Assembly: GCF_009834535.1 (NCBI RefSeq)
Contig: NC_045714.1
Location: 7,378,001 to 7,442,000, forward strand
DNA: 64,000 bases
DNA from: Camelus ferus
Lineage: Eukaryota
Direction: 5' to 3'
Shown piece by piece: positions 1-58,052 of the stretch. The notes beneath the pieces are model-generated. The model made no database searches. It saw nothing but the letters and a program-made list of their open reading frames with translations, and had not been told where the DNA came from. Made by a program: the position numbers and the translations under genes. Each line of letters opens with the position of its first letter. Positions within the stretch are counted from its first letter, which is position 1.

Positions 1-430
1 TGCGGGGGAACTGTACTGAGAAGTGACCTTTAAGGGAAGACTGGAGCAAGTGAGGAAGAAGTTCTGAGGTTGCCTGAAAGAAACAAACTCCAGAGGAGGG
101 AACAGTACCTGTCACTGCTCTGAGAAGGAACCACGATTTGTGTTTTACAAACTGTGTACTTGGAGTAAGTGAAGGGGAGATGGGTAATGGGGAGCCCAGT
201 CATTCAAGTTTCTTGGGTCATGTGGGGATGTTGACTTTTATGAACAAGTGACACATATGCCAGCAGAAGATTCTGATTATAGGTGGGCCTTAACGTGAAT
301 TGCGTTCTAACAGGATTATTCTGGCTGCTGTGAGAATAACATACTGTAGGGAACAGGCAAGTTTGTAGTTCATTGTCATAATTCAGGAGAGAGAGACTGG
401 GGGCTTGGACTAGGGAGGTAGCAATGGATG
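1..430 (-). mobile_element. L2 LINE fragment (3' region)
   Basis: Antisense L2-type text (actgagaagtgacctttaag... ggattattctggctgctgtgagaat... ggcttggactagggaggtagcaatgg). Confidence 0.7.
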
Positions 431-466
431 TGGTTGTTTCCTGACAATATTTCTTTGTCTGCTTAC

Positions 467-770
467 TCTTGTTTCTCCATTTCTAGCAACAGTTACTAAT
501 TCATGGTGATCACTGACATTTCCTACACTTTCAGGAGTTTCTTGAGCTCTGTCTGTTCCCCCAGTTTCATTGTTATCAAACAGCTTGGCTGTGATAGACT
601 GCTGATCTTCATCTTCATATTGATTAATTTTATTTTCACATGCATCACCCGTATCTCCAACATCTTCAGCAGTTTTCACATGATGAGTCATTTGCGAACG
701 ACAGATTTTCATTATAGGAGTCATCTTCCGGGTAGCACGTGTTGGACTAGACTCAGGTGAAATGTTTGCT
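467..770 (-). other. Candidate coding exon of an unidentified gene (D/E/N/T-rich, about 100 codons)
   Basis: Non-repetitive frame open from 769 to 410; AGA|GTAAGC donor at 467/466 in phase 0; purine-rich on the minus strand. No strong acceptor and no recognised homolog. Confidence 0.35.
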
Positions 771-1547
771 CAGTTCTGCCTAGTGCTCTCTCTCATGAAA
801 TGGAACTTGATGGGTTTTTTTTTTCTTTCTAATTTTTGAATCCGACCACTGTCAAAATAATTACAAAACTGTTTTCTCTTATTTATTTGCTGATTGGCTG
901 GGAATTGTGTTACTGTTTTACATGGGAAATATAATTCCAGCAGTCACTCCTTCTAAATGAAATGATGATGTGCTACATTTTGATTATATGACGTGTGCAT
1001 TACGGACTGAGGGCCTCAGTCCTGTGAGTCTCGCTACTAGAGTGGGTAGGAAAGAGGAACCTCACTCCAGCTAGCCCTGAATTGGCTAGCAGTCTCTTAT
1101 TTATGGCCTGGGTTGCAAATTCAAATAGCTCCCTGGGCCAGACAGCTGATATATGTGGGTGCATGAGGCAGGTGTAAGAAAATAGAGAGTGGAGGGGACA
1201 ATGCCAAGTTGGAGTCTGCAGTGATGAACAGCGTAATTTGCTTGTCCCATTGGAATGTGGTCCCAGCATTGATAGACTTCCTTAAAAGAAGCAGGAAATT
1301 TGGGCTATTATGGACGTCTGACTTTTAGTTTCTTTTCACTTTCTGAGGAACAAAATAAGTCTTTGCGCTAGATCAAATCCAAGTTCTCTAGTTTACAAGA
1401 ACACCTATGCCCCTCCTGTATTTATTATGCTGACTTTACTTGCTCCCAGTGATGATGACCATGTAGGGTTCAGCAGAGAAGATGCTTGTTATAAGTAACA
1501 GTAAAGAATCTGACTTGGGGAGGTTTACTAACCTATCTCCCCCCTCC

Positions 1548-1660
1548 TTTTTTTTTGTATTTTTTTTTTTTTATTGAAGTATAGTCACTTTACTATGTTG
1601 TGCCAATTTCTGGTGTGCAGCACAATGCTTCAGTCATACATATACATACACATATTCGTG
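1548..1660 (-). mobile_element. L1 3'-terminal fragment with poly(A) tail (camelid/cetartiodactyl type)
   Basis: Poly-T followed by ttattgaagtatagtcactttactatgttgtgccaatttctggtgtgcagcacaatg. Confidence 0.8.
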
Positions 1661-1779
1661 TGTAACCTACCCATTTTTGAACAGCTGTTGCCTTCTGTGT
1701 GGACCGAATATTGAACCCAGGCTGAACGGACCCTTAAGCTCTTCCTTCTGTCCTTTGCTGTCCACCAGACGGTAGACGG

Positions 1780-1845
1780 TGTTAGTAGAATTTGAGCTCA
1801 GGCCTTGGACACCAAATCCTGTGCTCTTTCCATCGCACTGCCCAA
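1780..1845 (-). mobile_element. MIR 5' fragment
   Basis: Reverse complement ggcagtgcgatggaaagagcacaggatttggtgtccaaggcctgagctcaaattctac resembles the MIR 5' end. Confidence 0.55.
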
Positions 1846-1889
1846 TGTCGCCACGTATGGGAAACTTTATAAGCAGAAAAGATAGTCTC

Positions 1890-2250
1890 ACTCTCCCTGA
1901 TTGGTTGCGGTGGGGGCGAGTGGGCGTGGCTCCCGGCTCCTGCTCGCCAAATCCTCACGCACGGGTGCGTCACAAGCCCCAGCGCATGCGTAACCAGCCT
2001 CCTCAGTTGCGGAGGCCAGCGGAAGAATTCACAGGGAGTGCCGGTTGGCTCCAGTCGGTGGGCTTGCTCTGCGGGCCACGAGCTGCACTTCCACCACCTG
2101 CTCCTTGCTCCTTTTCAGCTGCCCCGGGCCAGGGCCATACAGCAAGTGAGGGGGGACCTGCGGCAGGCAGGGCTCCCCAGGAATTGTGTGTGGCCTTAGT
2201 TGGGGGAGGGGGTCCTTAGGGGGCAAGGGCCCTAGGGCCTTCCGGTGCCG
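1890..2250 (+). promoter_or_regulatory. CpG-rich promoter-like segment upstream of the TSPY copy
   Basis: High GC and CpG. ATTGG (inverted CCAAT) 1900-1904; GGGCGTGGC Sp/KLF box 1922-1930; TGCGTCA CRE-like 1966-1972; GCGCATGCG NRF1-type 1982-1990; GCGGAAG ETS-like 2019-2025. Confidence 0.65.
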
Positions 2251-3167
2251 TGGGGGTGGGGCTGGATACGATACAGGCACTAGCTGGTGGGACGGCGGAG
2301 GAGGCCACTATCTTCAGGGTGGAGTCTGTGCCCGGAAGCGCGGCCCTGGAGGAGGGAGAGGTGGCTGCGGGGATCGGGGAGGAGGCGGCATTGGTGTTGG
2401 AGGACATCATGGAGGTGGTGGAGGTGGTGGCCGAGGAGGAGCAGGACGAGCAGGAGGAAGAGGTGCAGGCAGAGGAGCGGGATGAGAAGCTCCAGGAACA
2501 GGTGCTAGCAGAGCCAGGGCAGGGACGCACGACCACTCGGTCCCTGCTGGAGGCACTGGAGGCCCTTCAGTTGGAGCTGGAGCCTGTGAATAAGCAAGCC
2601 AGCAGGGCCTACTCTCGACTGAAGCTCAGGATATGTCAGAGACGGAAGCCGCATCTCCAACACAGAAGTACCATCATCCAGGGCATCCTTGGCTTCTGGG
2701 TCAAAGCTTTTATGAACCACCCCCAGATGTCAGCCATGATGAGTGACCAAGATGAAGACATGCTTAGCTACATGACCAATTTGAAGGTGGAGGAACTCAG
2801 ACATCCCACTGATTGCTGCAAGATCATGTTGTTCTTCCGGAACAACCCCTACTTCCAGAATGAAGTGATTGTTAAGGAGTATCTCATTAACATCGCTGGA
2901 TATAGGGCATCTCATTCCACTCCAATTCAGTGGTACCAGGGTTATGAACGTGAGGCTTACAGCCGCAGGCACCACAACAGCAGCCTAAACTTCTTCAACT
3001 GGTTCTCTGACCACAACTTTGCAGGATCTAGTAAGATTGCTGAGATCATCTGTAAGGACCTGTGGCTCAATCCCCTGCAATACTACCTGAAGGGGAAGAA
3101 GAGGGAACTGAGAGGAGGAGAGGAAAGCCCAGATTTTGAGACGAATATGACGGAGCATCACCCTTGA
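2250..3167 (+). CDS. TSPY: TSPY-like protein (NAP/SET histone-chaperone family); intronless retrocopy with intact frame. The first in-frame ATG is at 2409 (252 aa); the ORF track opens at GTG 2250.
   Basis: TSPY-diagnostic stretches EATIFRVE...[98 protein letters not shown] domain about 2544-3089 with no stop or frameshift. No introns; followed by AATAAA and an A10 tract. Confidence 0.9.
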
Positions 3168-3317
3168 CCTAAGATAGTGGAAAACCGAAGAAGCTGCTTC
3201 AGATGAAGATGAATGGTCAACGTGGTTCTCATGCACAGGAAAAAAATGAAGAGAGGTCTGGTGGTGAAACGCACAGAGGGGGAGACGCCAGTAAACCTGG
3301 AATAATATTGGAAGATA

Positions 3318-3349
3318 AATAAACAACAGCATCGTGTTTAAAAAAAAAA
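3318..3349 (+). terminator. Polyadenylation signal plus retroposed poly(A) remnant
   Basis: AATAAA at 3318-3323, then 16 nt, then A10 at 3340-3349 directly abutting a MIR. Confidence 0.85.
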
Positions 3350-3590
3350 GCTACGAGTCTAGACTTGGACCCTAGATTGACCAATCCTGACTTATTGTTA
3401 GGCGGTTTATTTAGCCTCTCTGAATTCTAGTCCTCCATCTATATAATGGGTTTATATTACTGTTACTACTACTACTAATGTGCTAATAAAAATAATGAGT
3501 TAATATTGAGATAATTATAAGGGTTGTTTGGATGATTGAATGACTCTGTATGTACAAAGTGCGTAAGTGTACAAAGGGTATAAAATTAGT
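3350..3590 (+). mobile_element. MIR
   Basis: ttagcctctctgaattctagtcctccatctatataatggg... ataagggttgtttggatgattgaatga. Confidence 0.65.
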
Positions 3591-4241
3591 GTCCACAAGT
3601 CCATATGTTGACATCAGTATCATTCATCTCATGTGAGAAACACTGCACTGTCTGTCTGCACTGAGCGCATCACGGACATCATTTGCCTCTACTATTAAGA
3701 CTCTGTGACAGGGAACATTTGCCCTTGATTTTCCTCACTAGTAGGACCTGCAGGTGAAGCTGACTCAAGGATTTGAAGACTTAGTCTTTTCTTTTAAGAT
3801 CCAGTACAAATAATCCAGCTGACTTAGGCTGGAAGCATCACCTGGCTTATAAGGAATCCTCCTTTTTGGATTATCTTTTCCTGACCACATGGAAATTACC
3901 ACCATAAAATTTAGAAGGCAGGACACAGGATCTGGATTAAATCCAATCTGATCTAAATCTCACCTCTACAGCTAGCCTGTTCTGCAGCCAGGGCCCAGGT
4001 ATAGTGGCTTCTGAGACTTACGCTTCAGTAAACTCAGGAAAATCTGTCTTGATCTATTTTTCTGTCTCTTCCTCTCTCCTCACCACTGTTGTTTATTTCT
4101 GACTTAAAAAAAAATCCTTAATTGTTGCCAGTTAGTATGAAAGTTACGCCAGTGAGACACAGATCTAGGAAAAGAGACTCCATCATTTTGGAAGTGAAAA
4201 TTGACTTCATAAAAAGTGTGCCACCAGCTTTAAGCTCAGGA

Positions 4242-4410
4242 TAATGCTCCAGAATGCATACTTTAAGGTGTGTGGGCGTTACTTTGAGATATTTAAAAAT
4301 GCAGATTCTGACTCAGCAGATCTAGGGTGAGGCCTAGAAGTTTGCTTTTATTCAAAGTGCCCAGGTGTTGCTGGTACTACTGGTCTACCGACCACACTTT
4401 GGGTAGGAAG
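4242..4410 (+). mobile_element. MER5A-type hAT-Charlie MITE
   Basis: aaatgcagattctgactcagcagatctagggtgaggcctag... accacactttgggtag. Confidence 0.7.
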
Positions 4411-4554
4411 ACCCTATAAAAGTGCCAAGTTCATCTTCTCATGTTTCTTTTCATCCTCAAATTACCCATTTTCCTTCAAGCATTAATGTTCAGAATGAGA
4501 GATTGTTTTATTCAATATATGCATTTTTCTGTTTTATTTAAAAGTGACCACAAT

Positions 4555-4695
4555 TTTTGATGGATTTATTACTTAATGGGGGGAAATCCTTATGCAATGT
4601 AAATGTATATCAAATAGTCACATTGTTCACTTTAAACATCTTTAAATATCTCACAGTCACATTTTATTTGTTAATTCTAAGTTGGAAAAAAAGTA
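4555..4695 (+). mobile_element. L1MA-type 3' end
   Basis: gtaaatgtatatcaaatagtcacattgttcactttaaa... ttttatttgttaatt then A-rich tail. Confidence 0.6.
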
Positions 4696-4834
4696 ACCAC
4701 ATTTAAGCTATGAATTAAAAAGGCTTTTTGTGTGAGAAAGAGTGGTTTTCTCAGGTACCAAACTACCATTGAGAACACTGTTTTCATGTTCAAAGATCTA
4801 AATGACCAAAATAATGATGATAATATAATAATAA

Positions 4835-5070
4835 TAATGGTAATGTTTGTTGAGCATATGCTTTGTCAAGCACCATGTTAGCATTTAATTTAGTGAATGT
4901 TTTTGATCATGATAACCATATGAGTTGGGAACTATTGCATTGATCTGAACTTTATACATGATAAACTAAAGGTAGGAAAGTCTGAGGAACTCATCCAGGA
5001 TCACAGAGCAGGTACATAGTGGAGTCAAGGTTGAACCCAAGACCTGGGATCCTTCAAAGTTTATGACCCT
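4835..5070 (-). mobile_element. MIR
   Basis: Antisense MIR text ending ggagtcaaggttgaacccaagacc. Confidence 0.65.
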
Positions 5071-5654
5071 GTAGAATTTGGGTACATGCCAGCCATGCAG
5101 GCTGGGTATAGTATCTGCTCAATGAAAATGACAGCAGGAAGAGCTTTGTCTGTGTCAACCCTGAGGGTCATGGTCTTTTCTTATTGCTGGGTTTCCCAGA
5201 GAGTATCCAATCTCAACAGATCCTTCAGAGTATTGGGACAGGTATACGAGGACAGAAGTGACCACAATAGGATGTAGCAGGTGAGGCTCAGCCCCAGCTA
5301 GGAAGGAGATGAAGGTGTTGAGAGGAGGTTCTTAAAGGTGTGGGTGAATCAAAAGGAAAATCTGTAAGGCAGCATTTCCTTATCTTTCAATCTTGTGAAA
5401 AATGCAAAATGCTACTCAAATGTAGCTTGATTGTTGGGTTCCTCTTGTGCTAAGACAGGGATTGAAGAGAAAATCTAATCAAACTTCTGAAGATTTGGCC
5501 TTTTGAACGAGCTTCTAGATAATAGCTCACGAGTAGTGTCAGGTCTAGCGTATGGGCAGTATGAGTCCAGGGGATCCCAAGGATAGGACATTCAGAGAGT
5601 CAGTGCGAGGTATTAGAGAAACCTGAGGCTCCAACACCCACCACCATCAGCAAT

Positions 5655-5810
5655 ATTGGGAAGTGGTAAAGAGAGTGGGTTCTGGAGCTAGACTCAATTG
5701 TTAACTAGCCTGGGAATTTGGGCTCTTCTTAGACTTGGATACCCTCTTTACAAAATGATACAATGGTATCTTCCTTATAGAGCTGTTCTGAGGATTAAAT
5801 GAGAGATTAT
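5655..5810 (+). mobile_element. MIR
   Basis: gtggtaaagagagtgggttctggagctagac... ttctgaggattaaatgag. Confidence 0.65.
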
Positions 5811-6482
5811 TTGGTTATTGATTTTCTCCCTTCTTAGACGATAGATTCTAGTAGACTACAAATAATCCCTAATTTTGTTTACTCTAATATTCCCAGACCT
5901 TTTGCTTCTTAATAACAAAGAAGGAATTGAAGAAATATCTTTAAATGAATGAACAAATAAAAACCCAGCCCATAAAAACACTTAGTACAGGGCCTGGTAT
6001 AGAATAGGAAATCAATAGATCTTAGCTAGTATAAATATTACCTTCCTTACTTGGATACAAGGAGGACTTGGATTGGTACAGTTTGGATTTAAAGCCAAGG
6101 GGTTTGGCTCCAGAGTCCATACTCTTTATTGATTGCTGTCTATCATTGATGTTCATTTAAGACTGATTTTTCCTTGTTCTTGCTTTAAGGCCTCCAGGTT
6201 GGGAAGATTTGCCTCTGAATTTATATCTCTTTGGACCAACCCTGATCTCTATTCCAGAGAGAGAACTATCTCAGCAGGGCCTAAGATGTCCATGGGTTTG
6301 GAAAAGACTTTGTGGACTGAGTAGGAATTGTACTTTTTAGTATCCTTGAATAACCCAAGCAAAGTTAACATTTATTAAAATTAAATTAAGGCTCTTGTTT
6401 CATCAGCTGGAAAGATGATATATAAAGAAATCAAAAGATGGGTAGCATTTAGCATCCCTGATCATAAAAAAATCATGAAATA

Positions 6483-6595
6483 CAAAATAAGAATATGAAA
6501 ATGAATATATGTGTGTGAATTTATGGCTGAACTATTATGCTGTACATCAGAAAGTGACATAGCATTGTAAACTGAATACTTCAATTAAAAAAAAG
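6483..6595 (+). mobile_element. L1 3'-terminal fragment (camelid type)
   Basis: aagaatatgaaaatgaatatatgtg... gctgtacatcagaaagtgacatagcattgtaaactgaatacttcaattaaaaaaaa. Confidence 0.75.
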
Positions 6596-7079
6596 GAAAA
6601 AAGGAAATGAAAAAAAGAGAAAAATATACTGTCAATCTTGCTAAATTATATGATGATATAAAAAATTCTATTAGATTGATTTTTAATTAATATAATAGTG
6701 AATGAAAGCTGAAAGATGATATTTTAGGAAGTTTTTATATTTTCCTTTGCAATATCTGTCTTTTTTAAACTTCTTAATAATAAACATTCATTATTTTCTG
6801 ATGAGAAAATGTATTATTATAAAGAACCCTCCCAATATGGTAGTACTAGAGGAATCTTGGTTAGTGACTCCAGTCACAACTTGTAAATCTGAATAATCTG
6901 GAAGTTTCTTTCTTCTTTGAGGGGAATCATTCCATCTGACTTTGGATCCAATCTCTCCTACCTTTCAGAGACATCAGTCTATGCATTATATCCTTTCTCA
7001 TCTCATTTCTCTCTTATCAGTTCCTTTTCATCGGCATTTTAACTTGGCCAAAGTCTCTGACATTTTAAAAATATTTCTC

Positions 7080-8100
7080 ATGGTCCTATGTTTGCTTATG
7101 TTGCCCTATTTTTCACCCATACTGAATATTATTATGTACTATTAAAATATTTATTATTTTAAGATATCTTTCTTTTTTATAAGTGGATTTAACCCATTCA
7201 TATTTATTAAATTGATTATTTGTATGCCATTGTATTATATCTTTTACTTACACGTGTTTTTTCTTTTTTCAAACTTTGACTTCCATTTGTGGATTGGCTT
7301 TTCTTGGTTTCAATTTTTCTCTAGAGTAGTTTCACAGTTACGTATCTTATTTAAATTTTTATGATGTTTATCTATAAATTTTAACTCATACGTATGAAGA
7401 TACATTTTTCCAGCCACATGTTGAGTTAATTGGAGTTTATATCTTTCCTCTGACCAAGAGAAAAACTTTAACATGCTTTACTCTATCCTCCAGCCCTACC
7501 TCTTAACCTGCCACGTAGTTTTTTTTTGAGGATTTCAGTTCTAGATTCTTATGAAAAGTATTTAGGTAATTGATTAATTATTAAATCTTATGTTTTATTG
7601 TGACTTGTTTCCCTCTCCTTCTTGTATATCACCTTCCTCTGGCACAGATTCTTTAGTAATTTCCCTGTGGTGTATCTTCAAGACAATCGAAGGGACTCTG
7701 TGGATGGAAATGTTCCTGATTTCTTACATGTTAGAAAACATCTGAATGATAGTTTACTTAGCTACAATCTTCTAAGTTTAAAATATTTTCCCTTCTATAT
7801 CCACTGTCTACAGTGTTGTCAATTAAAACTAATGACAATCACAATTTTAATCTTTTTAGGTAAAACTATTTTAGCTGTTTTTCTTTTTAGGTAAAACTAT
7901 TTTCATATGATTTTTTTTGCCTTTTTTCTGAAATTTCACCATAATGTATATAGGAGTGGGTCATATATTAGTGTTAGTTTTTATCTTGCTTGATGTTCAA
8001 AGGCCTATTCAATTTATTTTTCTTTTTCAGCACTAAGAGATTTTGTTATTTTATTTTTAAAATTTCTGTCCTCCTTCTAGAATTTCTTCTTGAAGAACAG
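7080..8100 (-). mobile_element. Old L1 (L1M) fragments
   Basis: Long T-rich degenerate stretch with L1M-like phrases (gtggatttaacccattcatattt, ggaaatgttcctgatttc). Confidence 0.5.
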
Positions 8101-8124
8101 TAGAAATTCTGAATCTACATTCTG

Positions 8125-8370
8125 CAGTCTCTGCCTCTGGTCACACTGTCTTTTCTTCTGTTGGTGTGGTCAAATCTCCCTCTGCCTCTCTCTTAAAGGA
8201 AAACTTGTGATGCATTTAGAGAGCACCAGGATAATCCTAGATAATCTTCCCACCTAAAGATTCTTAATTTAACCATATTTACAAAGACCATTTTTTCCAT
8301 ATAAGGTAACATGTCCAAGTTCCAGGGACTCGGACCTAATATGTTTGGGGGCCTTTAATCAGTGTATTCA
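8125..8370 (-). mobile_element. MLT1 (MaLR) solo LTR fragment
   Basis: ctccctctgcctctctcttaaagga... ataatcttcccacctaaagattcttaatttaaccatatttacaaagacc... aaggtaacat. Confidence 0.75.
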
Positions 8371-9878
8371 GGGTTCCTTCTGATCCTTCTAATTGTAGAC
8401 CTTGGGGCTAGAATTCTGTAGCTCTTCCAGCAGTCAGAGTTGTTTCACCTCTCTTGTTCAAACACCTCCTCTGTCTTCTATCCCCACCCTTTCCCCTCTT
8501 CCCAGTCCTTCCTCTTTCAACCTTTCCAACTCTCCCCACACAAGCCTTTTACCTTTTCCATTCATCTTCCTCACTCTTTTTCCACTCCTCCTTCTTCCTT
8601 TACACTCTATCCTCCAGTCTAATATCTCCACAGCTCCAATCAAATCTTCTCACCCCCAGCACATCAGGAATTCTTCCACATTTCTGGTTTGCGGACATTA
8701 TTTTTTCTACTTCCTTTCTAGTATCATGATTTATTTAATTGCAAACAAGCGAACAAAACCAAATCAGTTTCTGGAATTTTACTAAGTTCTTGGAGGGAGG
8801 AAGAACATACTTTACCATTTTAATCCCTGAAATAGCTCTTTATCAACCATACTTCTTTAGATTGTGAACTCCCAGTAGCAGAGACTCTGTCTTACATGTT
8901 TTTATTTACTTAACGCCCAGCACATGATGTTGCTCTTTCTTGTTTATTAAATGAATGTCATTGTGGATTTGATAAAATGAATTGTGTATGGTTGTTTTAA
9001 CTGATTACACAAATTGATTTGACTGCCATTTTCCTGCACAGAGAGGGTTCTCAGAAACCCAGTGATTGTTTGGACGATAATTTGAAAACCACACTCAAGT
9101 TTCTTTTAGTCCTGGTGGGTTGAACTTGAGAGTGCCGTTAACCCTTTCTCAGAAGAGTTGTTTGGAGGTGGATAGTGGCTTTGTGGCTTTTTGGTATGCA
9201 GCTGTTCACTTTCAAAACTTAATTTAAAACAATAAAAAATGTACATTGAAATCATTTTTGTCTCCCAATTTATTTAATATGATTTATTCTAAATGCATTT
9301 CATATCAACATAATGTATTGGAGCTCCACCACCACCTGTTATTTTGTAGGGGAAATAAACAAGACCTCTCTTATCAGATGAGTTAATTACACTGACATAT
9401 TCACTCCTCCCCAGAGATATCATAAACTAAAATGCTGCAAGCCTTTAATTCAAAAGAGCTGGATAGAAACAAGAAGTATGCAGTGGTGTATTTTCTTTGG
9501 AAGAATCAAAACTAAATACAATTGATCTTGGGGGGCAAGATGGCTTGAATTTATCAAATGGAGTCTAGTTAAGAGTCACATATGAAATCTGTAGGTGAGT
9601 TGAGCTTGAACCCATTTCTCAGTATTTGGCATTGTCTTTCGGTCTCTGTGCTTCTAAGCATCATGTGGTCATTTTCTTTACCTGCTTCTTCCTGTCATGT
9701 CTCCCTCCTCTCGGGTATCTGCCTGGTAATGGTTGTATATGCAAAAGGCCATTGGCACCAGGAAGAGTGCAGTGCAGTCTTACTTCAGTCTTGGGGGAAC
9801 ACAGCCACCACCAGCAGTAGTCACAGTGGCTTTCATCTCTTAGGGAACTTAGGTGGATATAGGGGAGGCTGCTGTGAG

Positions 9879-10352
9879 TGTCTTAGGTCAGAATCCCCAG
9901 AAGCAAAACCTGAGATGAGGATTCACATGCGAAAGATTTACTGAGCGTGTACTCCCAGAAGAATTGTATTAGCACATGAGGGAAGCAGGGCAGGGAAGGG
10001 AAAAAGACCAAGCAAGGTGTGAGCTCAGGCAAATCCCAGCCTCAGCCTGATCCTCTGGGGGTCTCTGGAGTATCAATCACACCTCAGAGCTTCTCCCAAC
10101 CTCCCAACTGGTGGCAAAACAACTGGATTTTTATGCTTCCCTCCATTGGTCACTGGCTGAGAGCCATAAACTCCCAGGAACTTCTGGTTCTCCTTCCTGT
10201 GTCAAAGTGTCAGTGTTGGCAGCCCCCTAAGAAATTCACAGTTAGGGGCAAAGCTCACAGAAACTCGAGGAGGGGGCAGTGCACAGGGCACAGAGAGACT
10301 ACGTAAGAGGAATTCAGGGGGATGCGAGAAGAGCACAGACAGTGTCTGCTGC
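9879..10352 (-). mobile_element. ERVL solo LTR (LTR16-family-like)
   Basis: tgtcttaggtcagaatccccagaagcaaaacctgagatgaggattc... cagcctcagcctgatcc... acagtgtctgctgc. Confidence 0.65.
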
Positions 10353-10544
10353 CTTGGGCTAGGGGAACCGAGGGCTTTATGTCTGCAGGCTGGGGGCTGG
10401 GGGAGGAGGATCCCCCCTCATCCATGTATCCTTGCATTAGGCACACTGTGCACAGCACCCATGGCCTGTATACCTTTTAACGATGTCTACAATATTTGAG
10501 ACCAAAAAACAAAATGAATTTAACTTTAAAAAATTACCTAAAAT

Positions 10545-12360
10545 TGATTAATTTATTAATTCAACAAATATGTAGTAAGCACATACTAATTTCTATTCTG
10601 TTCTGGGTGCTGATGTTATTTTTTTTTTAACATTTTTTTTTGATTTATAATCATTTTACAATGTTGTGTCAAATTCCACTGTTCAGCACAATTTTTCAGT
10701 CATTCATGGACATATACACACTCATTGTCACATTTTTTTCCTCTGTGAGTTATAACATTTTGTGTATATTTCCCTGTGATATACAGTGTAATCTTGTTTA
10801 TCTATTCTACAATTTTGAAATCCCAGTCTATCCCTTCCCACCCTCTACCCCCCTGGTAACCACAAGTCTGTATTCTCTGTCTGTGAGTCTATTTCTGTCC
10901 TGTATTTACACTTTGTTTTTGTTTGTTTGTTTGTTTTTTGTTTTTTTGTTTTTTAGATTCCACATATGAGCGATCTCATATGGTATTTTTCTTTCTCTTT
11001 CTGGCTTACTTCACTTAGAATGNNNNNNNNNNNNNNNNNNNNNNNNNNNNNNNNNNNNNNNNNNNNNNNNNNNNNNNNNNNNNNNNNNNNNNNNNNNNNN
11101 NNNNNNNNNNNNNNNNNNNNNNNNNNNNNNNNNNNNNNNNNNNNNNNNNNNNNNNNNNNNNNNNNNNNNNNNNNNNNNNNNNNNNNNNNNNNNNNNNNNN
11201 NNNNNNNNNNNTCCTGAAGTAGACTTCCTTCTGGATACAAGCCCAGGAGTGGGATTCCTGGGTCATATGGTAAGTCTATTCCTAGTCTTTTGAGGAATCT
11301 CCACACTGTTTTCCATAGTGGCTGCACCAAACTGCATTCCCACCAGCAGTGTAGGAGGGTTCCCCTTTCTCCACAGCCTCCCCAGCATTTGTCATTTGTG
11401 GATNNNNNNNNNNNNNNNNNNNNNNNNNNNNNNNNNNNNNNNNNNNNNNNNNNNNNNNNNNNNNNNNNNNNNNNNNNNNNNNNNNNNNNNNNNNNNNNNN
11501 NNNNNNNNNNNNNNNNNNNNNNNNNNNNNNNNNNNNNNNNNNNNNNNNNNNCTTCTGCCCATTTTTGGATTGGGTTGTTTATTTTTTTCTTATTAAGTCG
11601 TATGAGCTGCTTATATATTCTGGAGATCAAGCCTTTGTCGGTTTCACTTGCAAAAATTTTCTCCATTCCTTAGGTTTTCTTCTTGTTTTACTTCTGGTTT
11701 CCTTTGCTGTGCAGAAGCTTGTAAGTTTCATTAGGTCCCATTTGTTTATTCTTGCTTTTATTTCTTCTAGGAGAAAATTTTTGAAATGTATGTCAGATAA
11801 TGTTTTGCCTATGTTTTCCTCTAGGAGGTTTATTGTATCTTGTCTTATGTTTAAGTCTTTAATCCATTTTGAGCTGATTTTTGTATATGGTGTAAGGGAG
11901 TTGGGTGCTGATGTTATTACAGTGAACAAGACACAAAAAGACCTGCCTTTGTGATGAAAGTAGAAAGATGATAAACAGAATAAATGAGATATAGAGGGGT
12001 CTTATGTTGATAAGTCCCACGAAGGAAATGAGGTGGGAAGTGGGAGAGCCATAAGGCACATGGTGGCGGGGAAAGTAATTGTACTTTTATATGGGGTGGT
12101 CAGGGAAGGCTTCACTGAGAAGGTGACATTTCAGTAAAAGCCTGAAGGAGGTGGGGAATTTGCCATGGAGTTTCACAGAGGAAGTATATTCACAGCGCAG
12201 GAGTGGCAAGTGCAAAGGTCCTGAGGTAGGAGGATGCATCATGTGGAGAGAAGCAAGGAGCCCAGAGTAGCTGAGAATGTGTGATGGGGAGAGAAATAGG
12301 AAATGAGGTTAGAGAGGAGCACGGGGCTAGACAGTGTCAGGCTGGGAGACAACTGAAAAG
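10545..12360 (-). mobile_element. L2 element interrupted by a young L1 (L2 parts about 10545-10620 and 11902-12360)
   Basis: ttcaacaaatatgtagtaagcac... resumes after the L1 as acagtgaacaagacacaaaaagacctgcc... ggggtggtcagggaaggcttcactgagaaggtgacatt. Confidence 0.75.
10621..11901 (-). mobile_element. Young 5'-truncated L1 (ORF2 C-terminus, 3' UTR and poly(A)) with a perfect 17-bp TSD
   Basis: ORF2 motifs [78 protein letters not shown] at both 10604-10620 and 11902-11918. Two N gaps inside. Confidence 0.95.
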
Positions 12361-12449
12361 ATGCTGACTTTGTTTAACTTAACCATCATAAAATCTCCAT
12401 TATGTTTTTTAAAATGTCTAATTTGATTCTCTCACTTCCCTAAAATCCC

Positions 12450-12770
12450 TGTTATTAGGGTAAGGACAAGCCCATGTAGCAGAGGGACCTCAAAATAAAC
12501 TCTAACAAAATAGTTGTTTACGTCTCTCTTATGCAGCAGTGTGAGAGCAGGTGGGTGGTTCAGAGAGAGAGGCGGGATGAAGTCACGCAAGGGCCCAGGT
12601 TCCTTCCATCTCATTGCTCCACCAGCCTCTGAAGCATAGTCCTTGTATACATCATTGACCTTGACTGACTAGCTCCAGCTCATAACAAGAAGGAATGAGG
12701 GTAAAATAAATGAAGTCACTTCTGTCTAAGGAGCAGGATCTGAATGTTCATACGAGTCAGGCCTGCTCAT
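12450..12770 (-). mobile_element. Old MLT1 (J/K-like) LTR fragment
   Basis: ctaacaaaatagttgtttacgtctctct... gggcccaggttccttccatctcattgctcc. Confidence 0.55.
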
Positions 12771-13929
12771 ACACAATTGACCAGATTTAAAAACATGGTT
12801 ATAGTTAGAGGTACAGAAAAGCCTCCAGCTAGGTGACTTGTCTTCTAAAACTTGGGGTGGGGGGCAGTGAGAGTCTATTACTCAAATGAAGAATTGGAGA
12901 ATGGAACTCGGGGGCAATTAGCATTCTCTGCCATACATAATGATGGCTGGGTACTTACAGCGAAAAGCAAATCAAATGAGTTACTTAAAGCTAAATAGGG
13001 ATCTCTATAAAAATTCTTTTCACTCACTTTTAACAAAATAAATTATATATACAATGGAGTGGAAGTAGGGCCACATTTCAGGGAGCTCCATTCACAACTG
13101 GTTTTGTGCAATATGGCAGGCCTGGTAGTGTGTGTATTTTAATATACATGAGATAACTTGGGGTGGTGACTCCTACAATAAGTGTGCCCTGGGTTACAAG
13201 GTCTTAAAGCAGCCCTGCTCACTTTGGTCACACAGCGTTGCAGGTCTATGAGTCAAATGTCAGCTCACCCTAGGAAAAGTGGTGTTTGCAAACTGAACTC
13301 CTGGGAGGTGGCTTGATAAATCTGCAAACCAATTTATTCATTTACAGCAGGCAACATAGCCAGTACAATAACTCAACCAGTCTCTTTCCCGGTATTGNNN
13401 NNNNNNNNNNNNNNNNNNNNNNNNNNNNNNNNNNNNNNNNNNNNNNNNNNNNNNNNNNNNNNNNNNNNNNNNNNNNNNNNNNNNNNNNNNNNNNNNNNNN
13501 NNNNNNNNNNNNNNNNNNNNNNNNNNNNNNNNNNNNNNNNNNNNNGCTCGCTGAGAACCTGGCTCAGCTCTAAGCACCTTCTCCTTGAACTCTGATGTTG
13601 ACCCAAGTTTATCATCCCAGGCTTTTAGTGTACACTTGTAATCATTATATTACCTATTTTTTTTTTTAAATCTGAATTGTATTTTACATCAATGCAATTT
13701 TAAATGAGCTGTGTTCTGGCTGTGTCTAGGAAGGTCACTTCATCTCATGGATAAGCAGTAATCTTTCATCAGAGATAATTTCCTCTTTGTGATCTTTCTC
13801 TTTATTTTTTGGTCTGTCTCACTTTAGGTCCTCCCCCTCGCCCCACCGCCCTGCCCTTCTTTTCTCATAACTATAGCATATGTCTCAAAAAGCTGGGAAT
13901 AATATGCAGCTAAAACCACACCCTCCTTT

Positions 13930-46240: not shown

Positions 46241-49200
46241 TTCTCATTCCCTTATTTTCTTTCAATCCCAGTAGTTTATTGAGGTCCTACTATGTTCTAG
46301 ATCCAAAGCATACACCAGTGAACAAGACAGACGTGATCCTGGTTGTAAGAGGAGAAAATTAACGCTGAATGATTAATGAATGAGCAGGTGGATAGATAGA
46401 TGTAGGAAGGTCTAAATGCACATTTAGAGAAAAGCAGCAGAAGACTGAGGCTCAATATTANNNNNNNNNNNNNNNNNNNNNNNNNNNNNNNNNNNNNNNN
46501 NNNNNNNNNNNNNNNNNNNNNNNNNNNNNNNNNNNNNNNNNNNNNNNNNNNNNNNNNNNNNNNNNNNNNNNNNNNNNNNNNNNNNNNNNNNNNNNNNNNN
46601 NNNNNNNNNNNNNNNNNNNNNNNNCATCACACAGAGTCTATGGAAGGTAATAAAGAGGTGTAAATGAGAATTACACGGGTTAGTTGGTGTCATTAATGGT
46701 TCTTTTGTTCTGCTAGAGCAGCAGTATCTTATTCAGGAGACAGGGCTGCAGTTCTGGTTGACACAATAACTTAAACATACCCATTCAACTATGATTGGTT
46801 CTTCCAGGATGCTCTCCATCGCAAAAGCCCCTCACTCAAATGTATTGGCCACACTGTCCACTTCTGACCTCCCCTTTTTCCTGAGCCTTGCAGGGGCTTT
46901 AGTCATGTGGAGACATGTACTTTGTCAGAGTATGGTTCCACTCCTATCATTCTGTGTATGCTCTTGACATGGTTCTTTATTTCCTAGAAAGTTTCTAATC
47001 TGGTATCCAGCCCCTAATGAAATAAAACCATAGTGATCAGTTTTACAATAGACGCTACTACATGGGGACCCTGCTTATTTATTCAGAAATGTATGTCATA
47101 AAGATTGAATGAGAAGCTACTATTCAGAGCTGGGAAAAGCAATACTGTGTGTTAGGAAGAATCAGCATTTGTTAGCATAAGTAAGACTCTGAGTCTTGAT
47201 TATAAGTGTCAGTATGTTAAAAAACATTGACTAAATCCAGTGTGAAATCACAAGCCTGTAATGCAAATATATTTGGGGATATGCAAACACATTTATCCAC
47301 GGATTAATTCATTCACTCAACAGCAGTTTATTGAGTGCCTACCATGTGCAAGTGCTCTTCTAGGTGCCAGGAATGTAGTGGGAAAACACTCATAAACTTG
47401 TAATGCCCTTTGAGAGCTTATATTCTATTATAAGGGACTAGAAAATGCACAAAATAAAGACATCATTCCATTATCATTTATTGATAGACAGTAATAACTT
47501 TAATGTTAGCAAAGAAGTTTGGCTGAAACAAACTTGGAGAGTCTGTAATAGAAATATAAAGAGATTTGCTCTGTTTGCATATGTATTCGTGCTGTCTCAT
47601 GTGGACATTGCTAAGAATTGTGTTATCTTGGTTGGCCCACACATTTTTCGCATTCATTTCAAGATACAAAGTCATCAGTTAGCTGAATCTATTTATGTTG
47701 GTACTCAATAAGTGTTTATTGAATACATGGATATTACTGAGTTTAATTTTTATTAAAAATAGTTATTATAATTAAATTTCACAAATATTTTTGAATTATG
47801 TATTTTACACTAGCCTACATGAATGATGCTAGTGTCAGCACGACTAATAACTGCTACAATTTAATTTTTAGTTCTTAGCTTATTTGTCACCTATTTTAGA
47901 AAGATTTCCTTGGTCATTCTATCTACCAGGTATATGAACTATTACTTAATACTGCATCCTTCTAGTTTCCTTGATATTTGTTTTCTCAATGCACGCACAC
48001 AGTTTTATTTTTATGTATAATTGCTTATCATCTCTTTTCCTTAGTAGGCTGTAAACATCAGAAGGGAGGGGTTAAATCAGTTTTATCTGTGAATTCCCTT
48101 CATGATAACTGCCACATAGTAGTCCTTCAAGAATATTTACTAAATGAATGAAATCTATTCCCCTCCTTTCTCCTCCTGCTCTTCCCTCCTCTATCCTCGC
48201 TCCTTTCCTTCCTTTCTCCTTCTTTCCTTCCTTCCGTTTTCTTCTATCCATTCACTTCTTATTTCGTCTTTTCTGCAAATACTTATAGAACAATAATGGC
48301 AGCTAGTTTATTTATTGAGAGTTTATGAGCTACCAGACACCTTGGAAACAGATTAGTGATAATGCCTTAAAAAATGAAAGAAAACTAAATCTTATTGAGT
48401 GCCTACCTTGTATCAGGCACCATGCCAGGCTCTTTCTGCAAATTGTTCTCAATCCTTAAAAACCCCTGCACAACAATCATTTTCACTCCATTCGACAGGG
48501 AAGAATCTGAGATTCTGAGAGGGCAGGTTGAATGCCCAAGATCTCACCAGAGAGATCAGTAAAGGTCAAACTAAGATATAGAAAAATCTCTCTGAATCAC
48601 AGCTGGTGCTCTTTGCTGTCTCAAAGTAAACAAGCAATTAAAAAAATTTTTGTATTATGAGCACTAAATGATATGTTTGGATAAACAGGAGTGCTGAGGT
48701 ATAAATTGACATTGCTCTTATGAATAACACTGCAACTTTTGTTCTTATGTTCTCAGTGTAGCTTCAAACAAAAGAACATCATCTGATAATTGGAATTCCA
48801 CCATCTGCTAATTGAGAGGGCTGAATGTTCCCAGAGGAGTTAGAGAATGAGACTTTGGGCTCCAAATGAATACAAGTGTTGGGACTACCTCCCACTTTAG
48901 GTCATTAAAGATCACATCTTTATGTCTCCACTTCTTTCCTTGTCTTCCAGCAACATGCAGGATTCCATTTGAGGACTCAGTTCTTCCTGGACTCAGTCCA
49001 CTTGTCCTGAATGAGGCTTCTTCCTCAGCGGCAGGGTTGATGCCTCAGGCTGAAGCTGAGCAGGGCATTGTATTCCTTGAGACACTAGAATGACTCAGTT
49101 CAGAGTGAGCTGAGCTGGCCCAATCATAGTAAATCCTGAGGTCTATGTAGGTATCACCAGAAAATAGATTCTCTACTGCTCTGGATTTTTCCATGGGAAG

Positions 49201-56858: not shown

Positions 56859-56859
56859 G

Positions 56860-56914
<55 letters not shown>
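56859..56914. repeat. (GT)3 GC (GT)24 microsatellite
   Basis: Read directly from the sequence. Confidence 0.95.
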
Positions 56915-56916
<2 letters not shown>

Positions 56917-57608
56917 ATCCCAGGGAGAAATTAGGGGGAAAAGGTGACTTTTATTGCTGAAATTAATTTTATTGTCATACTAACTAACCCTCTTCCTCCT
57001 CACTCCTTGCTATCACACAGAGATAAAAAGGTGACGAGAAATGCTTTTTCAGACACCATGGTTTCTCACAGTGTTTGGGAATTCTGGCAGCCGAATGTTA
57101 GGTTTGTAAATATGTCCCAGAAAACTGCAAAGCTACAAACAGATACATAAAGAATGAGGAATCTGATTAAGAAATGAGCATTTATGTTTTTACTGGATTT
57201 TACTTTTAACATAAAACATCTTGGAAAAAGTTTTATGATTTAGCATTTATGAATGACTAGATTTTAAGAGAATTGTAATATTTTTTTAGGGTATTTCAGC
57301 TCTATGNNNNNNNNNNNNNNNNNNNNNNNNNNNNNNNNNNNNNNNNNNNNNNNNNNNNNNNNNNNNNNNNNNNNNNNNNNNNNNNNNNNNNNNNNNNNNN
57401 NNNNNNNNNNNNNNNNNNNNNNNNNNNNNNNNNNNNNNNNNNNNNNNNNNNNNNNNNNNNNNNNNNNNNNNNNNNNNNNNNNNNNNNNNNNNNNNNNNNN
57501 NNNNNNNNNNNNNNNNNNNNNNNNNNNNNNNNNNNNNNNNNNNNNNNNNNNNNNNNNNNNNNNNNNATTTAATTTATCCATCCAAGACCACCAGAAGTAT
57601 GAAAATAC

Positions 57609-57919: not shown

Positions 57920-58052
57920 TTTTTTTTTTTTTTTTTTTTTTTGAGTGGGTAAATTAGGTTTGTTTATTTGTTTAACCAGAGGTACTGGGGATTGAACCCA
58001 GGACCTTGTGCATGCTAAGCACATGCTCTACCACTGGGCTATACCCTCCCCC
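57920..58052 (-). mobile_element. Camelid tRNA-derived SINE (Vic-1-like)
   Basis: Reverse complement GGGGAGGGTATAGCCCAGTGGTAGAGCATGTGCTTAGCATGCACAAGGTCCTGGGTTCAATCCCCAG with A and B boxes, aaacctaatt body and A23 tail. Confidence 0.85.

Follow-up and report, generated by a model that had tools for sequence, protein, structure and literature searches.

In the window, by which we mean the whole 64-kb stretch of Camelus ferus DNA analysed here, the longest open reading frame is located on the forward strand at 2250..3167, with 305 codons and a stop, and it is longer by a factor of two than the runner-up among the N-free frames, which encodes 157 amino acids. In fact the frame is open already at 2220, right behind an in-frame TAG at 2217-2219, and it ends with the TGA at 3165-3167; at 2250 it has a GTG, and its first ATG comes only at 2409. 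The preliminary description of this DNA had spoken of an intact frame of 305 codons, of which the absence of stops from 2250 to 3167 stands, but not the intactness, as the frame begins with GTG and has the in-frame TAG at 2217 before it. The AATAAA at 3318 and the A10 tract at 3340 of the same description were seen at 3318-3323 and 3340-3349. Moreover, when the retrocopy was searched against the 64-kb window by blastn and tblastn, no second TSPY unit was found, and because its DNA and its protein match themselves only, the window holds a single TSPY unit, in agreement with the earlier statement that no further unit lies nearby.

To trace the origin of this copy, the dromedary Y-linked "TSPY4-like" gene (XP_064339618.1; locus L002, with the gene at 10001-11870) was taken as the intron-bearing reference. 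By blastn, L002 aligns with the window in six collinear blocks, the 5' leader and the 3'UTR included. The exon ends in L002 were set by splice-site inspection (AG...GT, with one GC donor), which gives exons of 510 (from the ATG), 78, 112, 146 and 85 nt and a last exon. From the blastn blocks and the splice-site context, five intron-loss joins were placed on the forward strand at 2708/9, 2786/7, 2898/9, 3044/5 and 3122/3; that is, all five introns of the dromedary Y gene are absent from the window copy exactly at the exon junctions. The first four joins, which the preliminary description had already given, are exact on L002 with its internal exons of 78, 112 and 146 nt, and the join at 3122/3 is one more beyond them. 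The 3'UTR (3168..3339, +) has 80% identity to L002 12610-12805, which belongs to the last exon of the Y gene, and contains the AATAAA at 3318-3323. The A run begins 16 nt past this signal; only about six A at 3340..3345 (+) are left of the poly(A) tail, and the other A of the A10 run are part of the duplicated target site. With the Y-gene introns missing at the splice junctions and a poly(A) remnant present, the proposed origin from a spliced mRNA is borne out.

The target-site duplication (TSD) has its 5' copy at 1875..1888 (+), with 14 nt in Camelus after a 3-bp deletion and 17 nt in alpaca, and its 3' copy at 3345..3360 (+), placed by the alignment with alpaca. The alpaca sequences, AGAAAAGATAGGAGTCT for the 5' copy and AGAAAAGCTACGAGTCT for the 3' copy, match at 15 of the 17 positions. 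The core of the TSD (13/15 matched) is found exactly at both ends of the insert, a match equalled in 2 of 500 shuffles of the searched flanks, and the TSD adjoins the point where the Y-gene homology starts. Another TSD candidate, CTTGGAC... at 1804 and 3364, was dropped, the 15/17 match abutting both insert ends being preferred. From the limits of the Y-gene homology together with the flanking TSD, the insert extends from 1889 to about 3345, and the poly(A) remnant and the TSD at its two sides support the retroposition by L1 that had been suggested. Hence 1889-3345 of the window is a full-length processed copy of Y-linked TSPY.

A protein search over about 5.8 billion proteins, in which the best 120 matches were considered, places the encoded protein in the same family. 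The named proteins among these 120 are TSPY in every case, and the relatives have 52-74% identity apart from the protein's own orthologue cluster at 98%, which consists of predicted proteins of Camelus ferus, C. bactrianus, C. dromedarius and Vicugna pacos. Together with the exon-by-exon and 3'UTR nucleotide homology to Y-linked TSPY, this agrees with the earlier assignment to TSPY proper and not to the TSPYL or TSPX types.

As for the chromosomal location, the window comes from the forward strand of the C. ferus record CM020786.1 (GCA_009834535.1; 43.7 Mb), at about 7.38 Mb. The orthologous loci in dromedary (CM070327.1, 48.0 Mb) and alpaca (CM108738.1, 46.9 Mb), both in chromosome-level assemblies, are collinear with 1-9000 of the window, with 99.5% and 96.9% identity respectively; in the dromedary "Waris" the locus is at 8.3 Mb of the CamDro3 record CM016645.2 (45.2 Mb). 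Over four camelid species, the Bactrian camel included, the records bearing the retrogene span 43.7-53.4 Mb, a chromosome size that speaks for an autosome and against the X. The dromedary Y is a record of its own (CM070347.1, 20.6 Mb), which holds intron-bearing TSPY genes and lacks the window's gene. Moreover, the CamDro1-3 assemblies derive from the female "Waris" and comprise chromosomes 1-36 and X only (PMC7468183), and CamDro3 carries the locus in full, its ORF being the same as in the other dromedary. Since the insertion is found at the matching place in dromedary (the female CamDro3 included), Bactrian camel and alpaca, it is not Y-linked and is older than the camel-alpaca split. The copy is thus off the Y and carried by females, both as predicted from the window, on chromosomes of 44-53 Mb and with the dromedary Y assembled separately.

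It is hardly conceivable that the locus is Y-linked after all or that Y sequence was misplaced on an autosomal scaffold. Such a misplacement does occur in the C. ferus assembly, which puts Y-type TSPY genes on a 102-Mb record, but the 9 kb around the copy are collinear in the dromedary and alpaca chromosome-level assemblies, the Y in mCamDro1 is a separate record from the retrogene's chromosome, and the locus with an identical ORF is present in the female assembly. In addition, the transcript-derived TSPY primers of published PCR work are male-specific in alpaca, dromedary and Bactrian camel, so that they detect another gene. A further candidate connection, to the camel chromosome-18 growth-GWAS locus annotated "TSPYL4" (about 30 Mb, near DEXI/CIITA), was discarded as its position does not match the 8.3 Mb of our locus in CamDro3.

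The 5' leader of the copy (1889..2408, +) consists of parental upstream and 5'UTR sequence and of a decayed N-terminal coding part. The Y-gene homology starts abruptly at 1891, which corresponds to L002 9564, 437 nt upstream of the Y-gene ATG. As transcription of the source began 437 nt or more before the Y start codon, the copy brought along the CpG-rich proximal region of its parent. The segment 1891-2141 is CpG-island-like (GC 0.66, CpG o/e 0.63) compared with CpG o/e of 0.14-0.29 in the flanks and 0.29 in the copy's own coding part, and it bears a CCAAT box (GATTGG), a GC box and an NRF1-like GCGCATGCG, all of which are common to the Y gene and identical between camel and alpaca; the leader overall, with 3.9% camel-alpaca divergence, is not conserved above neutral. 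The retained CpG in an old insertion suggests germline hypomethylation, and the inherited CpG-rich segment may act as the promoter of the retrogene, judging from its composition and motifs. A bidirectional promoter of the host at the CCAAT/GC-box region was also considered and ruled out, for the region is inside the insert and homologous to the Y gene; the idea is further weakened by the low CpG o/e of the upstream host flank (0.2-0.3).

In the DNA alignment with L002, a GTG stands at 2250..2252 (+) where the Y gene has its ATG, and this is the case in C. ferus, dromedary and alpaca. The TAG at 2217..2219 (+), also conserved in these three species, sits in a stretch which in bovid TSPY, aligned in the same frame, is N-terminal coding sequence. 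In-frame ATGs are found at 1845 and 1857, which are in host DNA outside the insert, at 1986, and at 2409; the last has A at -3 and G at +4, and its methionine is conserved. Given the change of ATG to GTG and the upstream TAG, the product likely begins at ATG 2409, and about 55 N-terminal residues are probably missing since the parental ATG has been lost. The proposed coding sequence, 2409..3167 (+) with 252 codons and TGA, would encode the complete NAP domain together with the dimerisation helix and an acidic stretch. A transcript beginning close to the 5' boundary of the insert would, ahead of ATG 2409, also contain an upstream ORF of 77 codons (ATG 1986 to TAG 2217).

The existing annotations differ in this respect. 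The CamDro3 protein KAB1262647.1 has 252 amino acids and starts at ATG 2409, whereas the RefSeq models bypass the TAG via a GC-AG intron of either 78 nt (2142-2219) or 135 nt (2142-2276), so that their N-termini differ from the 2409 start and their lengths are 414 and 348 amino acids. One orthologous autosomal gene thus appears under several database names (TSPY3, 3-like, 4) and lengths (252, 348 and 414 aa).

Comparison of camel with alpaca reveals where along the insert the protein is constrained. The flanks diverge by 2.3-2.5% and have 24 indels in 7.5 kb; 1889-3167 has zero indels where about four are expected. For 2409-3164, dN is 0.0033 and dS 0.027, with an omega of 0.12-0.16; 4 synonymous changes were counted but only 2 nonsynonymous ones, where the flank rate, which dS equals, would predict about 15 (P=3e-5). 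Upstream of ATG 2409 the picture is different: 1845-2141 has dN 0.032, dS 0.068 and omega 0.47; 1986-2141 has dN 0.027, dS 0.076 and omega 0.35; 2220-2408 has dN 0.038, dS 0.124 and omega 0.30; and 2277-2408 has dN 0.053, dS 0.125 and omega 0.42. With dN of 0.027-0.053, at or above the neutral value (0.025 in the flanks), these parts are unconstrained as protein. Seven amino-acid differences occur in the 305-codon frame, five of them within its first 52 codons, and the density of nonsynonymous changes is 13-fold higher upstream than downstream of ATG 2409 (Fisher P=0.0017). As the constraint begins at this conserved internal methionine, the 252-residue product is favoured. The retrogene is under purifying selection from ATG 2409. 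The earlier suggestion of a retrocopy that kept its frame holds for the part downstream of 2409, by its low dN, but not for the parental 5' end, which has decayed.

These values bear directly on whether the working product could be the longer RefSeq-type protein, with 348 or 414 residues from ATG 1986 or 1845 and a GC-AG mini-intron of 135 or 78 nt. The NCBI models do use the long structure (XP_032318222.1 and XP_064332047.1 with 414 aa, XP_072799634.1 and XP_074204004.1 with 348 aa), frame 0 is open from 1779 to 2219 with three ATGs conserved in camel and alpaca, and the donor GCAAGT agrees with the GC-donor consensus. However, dN in the additional segments does not fall below the neutral flank rate and is ten times that of the frame after 2409, and ATG 1845 is in host DNA outside the insert; long open frames arise by chance in GC-rich DNA, and both mini-introns are multiples of three that remove the sole stop, which is the typical choice of a frame-preserving gene predictor. 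The independent CamDro3 annotation, moreover, begins at ATG 2409 and not upstream. We therefore regard the longer protein as unlikely, and the product is probably the 252-residue NAP-domain protein from ATG 2409.

The selection on this shorter frame was examined further. The frame is intact in C. ferus, in two individuals of dromedary, in Bactrian camel and in alpaca, so that both dN/dS and the state of the frame in the sister camelids came out in favour of a maintained gene. The three-species tree has as many nonsynonymous as synonymous changes, 5 each, and the former compare with 16 expected at the flank rate (P=0.001); the internal binomial test on these small counts (5 of 10 changes nonsynonymous) gives only P=0.034. 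Between C. ferus and dromedary, 4 nonsynonymous and 1 synonymous changes give an omega of about 1, the numbers being too few to interpret, and the dromedary branch holds three Camelus nonsynonymous changes, E62D, R197Q and T224S. Along the long path from the retrogene to the Y gene the average omega is about 0.5 (dN 0.134, dS 0.26). Of the 57 positions where conservation among 42 other TSPYs reaches 90% or more, the 252-residue product keeps all 57, the top rank in the set, compared with 88-97% in the camel Y copies. The probability that a frame of 252 codons survives neutrally is 0.035 if only the crown is counted, and it falls to 2e-3 at K=0.05 and to 4e-6 at K=0.1.

A processed pseudogene, with a frame that is open by chance, possibly transcribed and without protein function, would account for the lost parental start codon, the in-frame stop upstream, the omega near 1 that the very few changes between the two Camelus species give, and the absence of the product from Logan transcript contigs. 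For the latter, neither the 252-aa C. ferus product nor the alpaca 396-aa model had a carrier among the Logan assembled transcript contigs. Against this, four species at 2.5% neutral divergence have kept both the frame and ATG 2409 intact, with zero indels, dN is seven-fold under the flank rate, all the family-conserved residues are still present, and the dS of 0.26 to the parent puts chance survival of the frame at about 1e-6. We consider such a pseudogene very improbable; a frame that has been readable and slow-changing for tens of millions of years is probably a working gene.

The insertion, the TSD and the start-codon loss are common to camels and alpaca, which places the event before the Camelini-Lamini split. 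How much earlier it took place is more difficult to tell from divergence. The dS between the retrogene and the nearest Y gene, 0.26, is about ten times the camel-alpaca dS, and the 3'UTR identity is the 80% given above. Between dromedary and C. ferus the substitution is 0.55% on the Y and 0.35% on the autosome, a ratio of about 1.6. A strict-clock date from the dS of 0.26, the recent camelid rate and this ratio exceeds 100 My, which is impossible, and it was dropped; for this reason we limit our claim to an age older than the camel-alpaca split and probably in the early stem of Camelidae. Faster earlier rates, or a lost or unsampled Y paralogue as the true parent, may explain the misfit of the clock.

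A maximum-likelihood tree was built with TSPY only and rooted on xenarthran and afrotherian TSPY. In this tree the retrogene clade (100/100) is nested in artiodactyl TSPY (90/93), where it forms a polytomy with the camel Y TSPY4-like genes, pig, cetaceans and ruminants; a clade of the retrogene with camel Y TSPY4-like is not rejected (AU p=0.24). The root-to-tip path of the retrogene is the shortest among the artiodactyl TSPYs in the tree. Taken together, the copy probably arose tens of millions of years ago in the early part of the camelid stem lineage, or possibly before it. The pig protein P0002, the best non-camelid match with 70% identity, was considered as an orthologue and set aside, as it falls in a separate pig clade. 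Its N-terminus resembles a tandem-array chimera. It was also supposed that within Camelus the Y TSPY evolves more than 10 times faster than the retrogene, which is rejected by the dromedary and C. ferus Y "TSPY4-like" proteins being identical at 224 of 228 residues; the long Y-TSPY branches in the tree are an artefact of differing C-terminal isoforms.

TSPY and SET are dimeric NAP-fold proteins that take part in germ-cell chromatin and cell-cycle control. In the window's protein the NAP domain PF00956 (Pfam) scores 61.4 bits (1e-16) against a gathering cut-off of 28.6, and human SET structures are matched at 7e-41 over residues 107-290. By homology, the 252-residue product would be a histone-chaperone-type, cyclin B-binding protein of germ cells.

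The following course of events would account for these observations. A spliced, polyadenylated mRNA of Y-linked TSPY, from the "TSPY4-like" lineage or a close relative, would have been reverse-transcribed, and the L1 machinery would have inserted the cDNA into an autosome in the camelid stem, well before the split of camels from llama and alpaca. The long source transcript would have carried the CpG-rich proximal region of the parent, a possible promoter, into the autosome. Then the parental start codon would have decayed, from ATG to GTG and with the upstream TAG in addition, and selection would have maintained the frame from the internal methionine at 2409, leaving a TSPY without about 55 N-terminal residues; the truncated protein would still hold the whole helix-plus-NAP domain. 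Overall, an L1 retrogene of Y TSPY from the camelid stem, maintained from ATG 2409 with a 252-residue product, is in our judgement the best explanation, and we hold it with good though not complete confidence.

As a rule, TSPY has been studied only in the form of a Y-linked multicopy array. Here a TSPY that is autosomal, single-copy and recombining has been kept by selection beside the Y copies. This natural experiment could show what role TSPY has once it is no longer tied to the Y, limited to males or subject to sex-chromosome silencing, and whether back-up copies on autosomes arise before the decay of a Y gene and not after it. In practice, TSPY-based sexing and copy-number assays in camelids can cross-react with the autosomal copy, and the divergent RefSeq names and N-termini mask the single orthologous autosomal gene. 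A more far-reaching idea is that this copy has taken over from the Y copies as the canonical TSPY of camelids, in view of its full set of family-conserved residues, its being the slowest artiodactyl TSPY and the drifting Y genes; we regard it as speculative and rather doubtful. If it is true, a core spermatogenesis gene that is elsewhere universally Y-linked would be midway in its transfer with the Y gene still existing, and expression would be possible in females.

In the literature, TSPY is among only seven Y genes present in all 25 placental mammals surveyed (PMC7674692), and published work on alpaca has TSPY on the MSY with a uniform exon-intron structure. A full-text literature search returned no description of a camelid autosomal TSPY gene, which so far exists only as RefSeq or GenBank models, differently named and started and without comment. 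The kind to which it belongs, the autosomal retrogene derived from a sex chromosome, is already familiar. In a survey of XY-derived retrogenes in 25 placentals without camelids, four other gene pairs make up about 95% of the retrogenes found.

Compared with its Y-linked relative in L002, the window copy is alike in nucleotide sequence (86-88% identity in exons 2-4, with homologous 5' leader and 3'UTR) and in the NAP domain and family-conserved residues, which both possess; it differs in being intronless, single-copy, autosomal and present in females. The protein identity to the camel Y copy is 65%, and about 14% of the coding sites differ between the retrogene and Y TSPY. Regarding the leader, Carelli et al. 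2016 (PMC4772013) documented inheritance of a parental promoter in about 3% of expressed retrocopies. Like those retrocopies, ours has 360-520 nt of parental sequence upstream of the coding part, and this is CpG-island-like; there, however, the parental start site is upstream, whereas here the segment is a candidate promoter. Hughes et al. 2015 (PMC4446799) described eight transpositions from sex chromosome to autosome, with the Y gene lost each time and TSPY not among them, and cited the relocation of TSPY in Tokudaia. In camelids too, a conserved Y gene family has gained an autosomal copy kept by selection. The difference is that Y-linked TSPY is still present and male-specific: the dromedary Y retains intact intron-bearing TSPY genes, whereas the Y parent is lost in transpositions of the Hughes type. 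The "rescue" of a Y gene that the preliminary description had in mind is therefore not borne out, given the persistence of such copies on camelid Y chromosomes, and the gene in the window is an added autosomal paralogue.

Finally, TSPYL1/4/5/6 are intronless autosomal genes of the TSPY/TSPX/SET superfamily that were retroposed and retained as functional. The camelid gene is of the same form, being likewise a retroposed, intronless, autosomal NAP-domain gene, but the parent lineage of TSPYL1/4/5/6 is another and much older one (TSPX/TSPYL2-like), while the window copy has TSPY proper as its best 120 relatives and shares UTR sequence with the Y gene.

As for the in-frame TAG of the window's intronless TSPY copy, the RefSeq models excise it by means of a GC-AG mini-intron of either 78 nt (window 2142-2219) or 135 nt (2142-2276), both lengths being divisible by three, and this mini-intron could represent true splicing or a prediction that preserves the frame. 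Moreover, a comparison of the copy with its dromedary counterparts places one synonymous change and three amino-acid replacements (E62D, R197Q and T224S, numbered on the 305-codon frame) on the dromedary branch, and the two dromedary individuals agree in all of them.

On the dromedary Y, two adjacent TSPY genes of different subfamilies are located at 6161-8406 and 9781-12805 of the locus L002. The subfamily annotated as TSPY1-like is strongly diverged, with a protein identity of only 51-58% to the window protein, and in the tree it clusters with horse, apart from the other artiodactyls (support 87/85), a grouping that possibly reflects long-branch attraction or ancient paralogy. In the TSPY4-like gene, the donor of intron 3 is GC instead of GT (L002 11483).

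Besides the TSPY copy, the window contains on the minus strand an ORF (10953-11666) similar to the C-terminal portion of L1 ORF2, which is broken by masked N runs at 11023-11211 and 11404-11551; other such runs are found at 13398-13545, 46461-46624 and 57307-57566. A tRNA-Ala(AGC) match, also on the minus strand (57977-58048; Rfam 52 bits, and ARAGORN), could be either a genuine tRNA gene or the head of a tRNA-derived SINE. A masked N run adjoins this match, and a (GT)28 microsatellite lies nearby at 56859-56914.

In dromedary, the intron-bearing TSPY4-like locus (L002) belongs to the Y record of 20.6 Mb, but in the C. ferus assembly (L005) it is part of the 102-Mb record CM020804.1, the two loci being 98% identical over 4.2 kb. 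Probably, Y sequence has been scaffolded into this large chromosome in the male C. ferus assembly. Among the best 120 protein matches, TSPY-named proteins of several other mammals also come from very large records, namely those of Mesoplodon (142 Mb), Cynocephalus (181 Mb), Nasalis (152 Mb) and Suncus (93 Mb). It may be a frequent situation that TSPY copies lie off the Y, or that Y sequence is misplaced.
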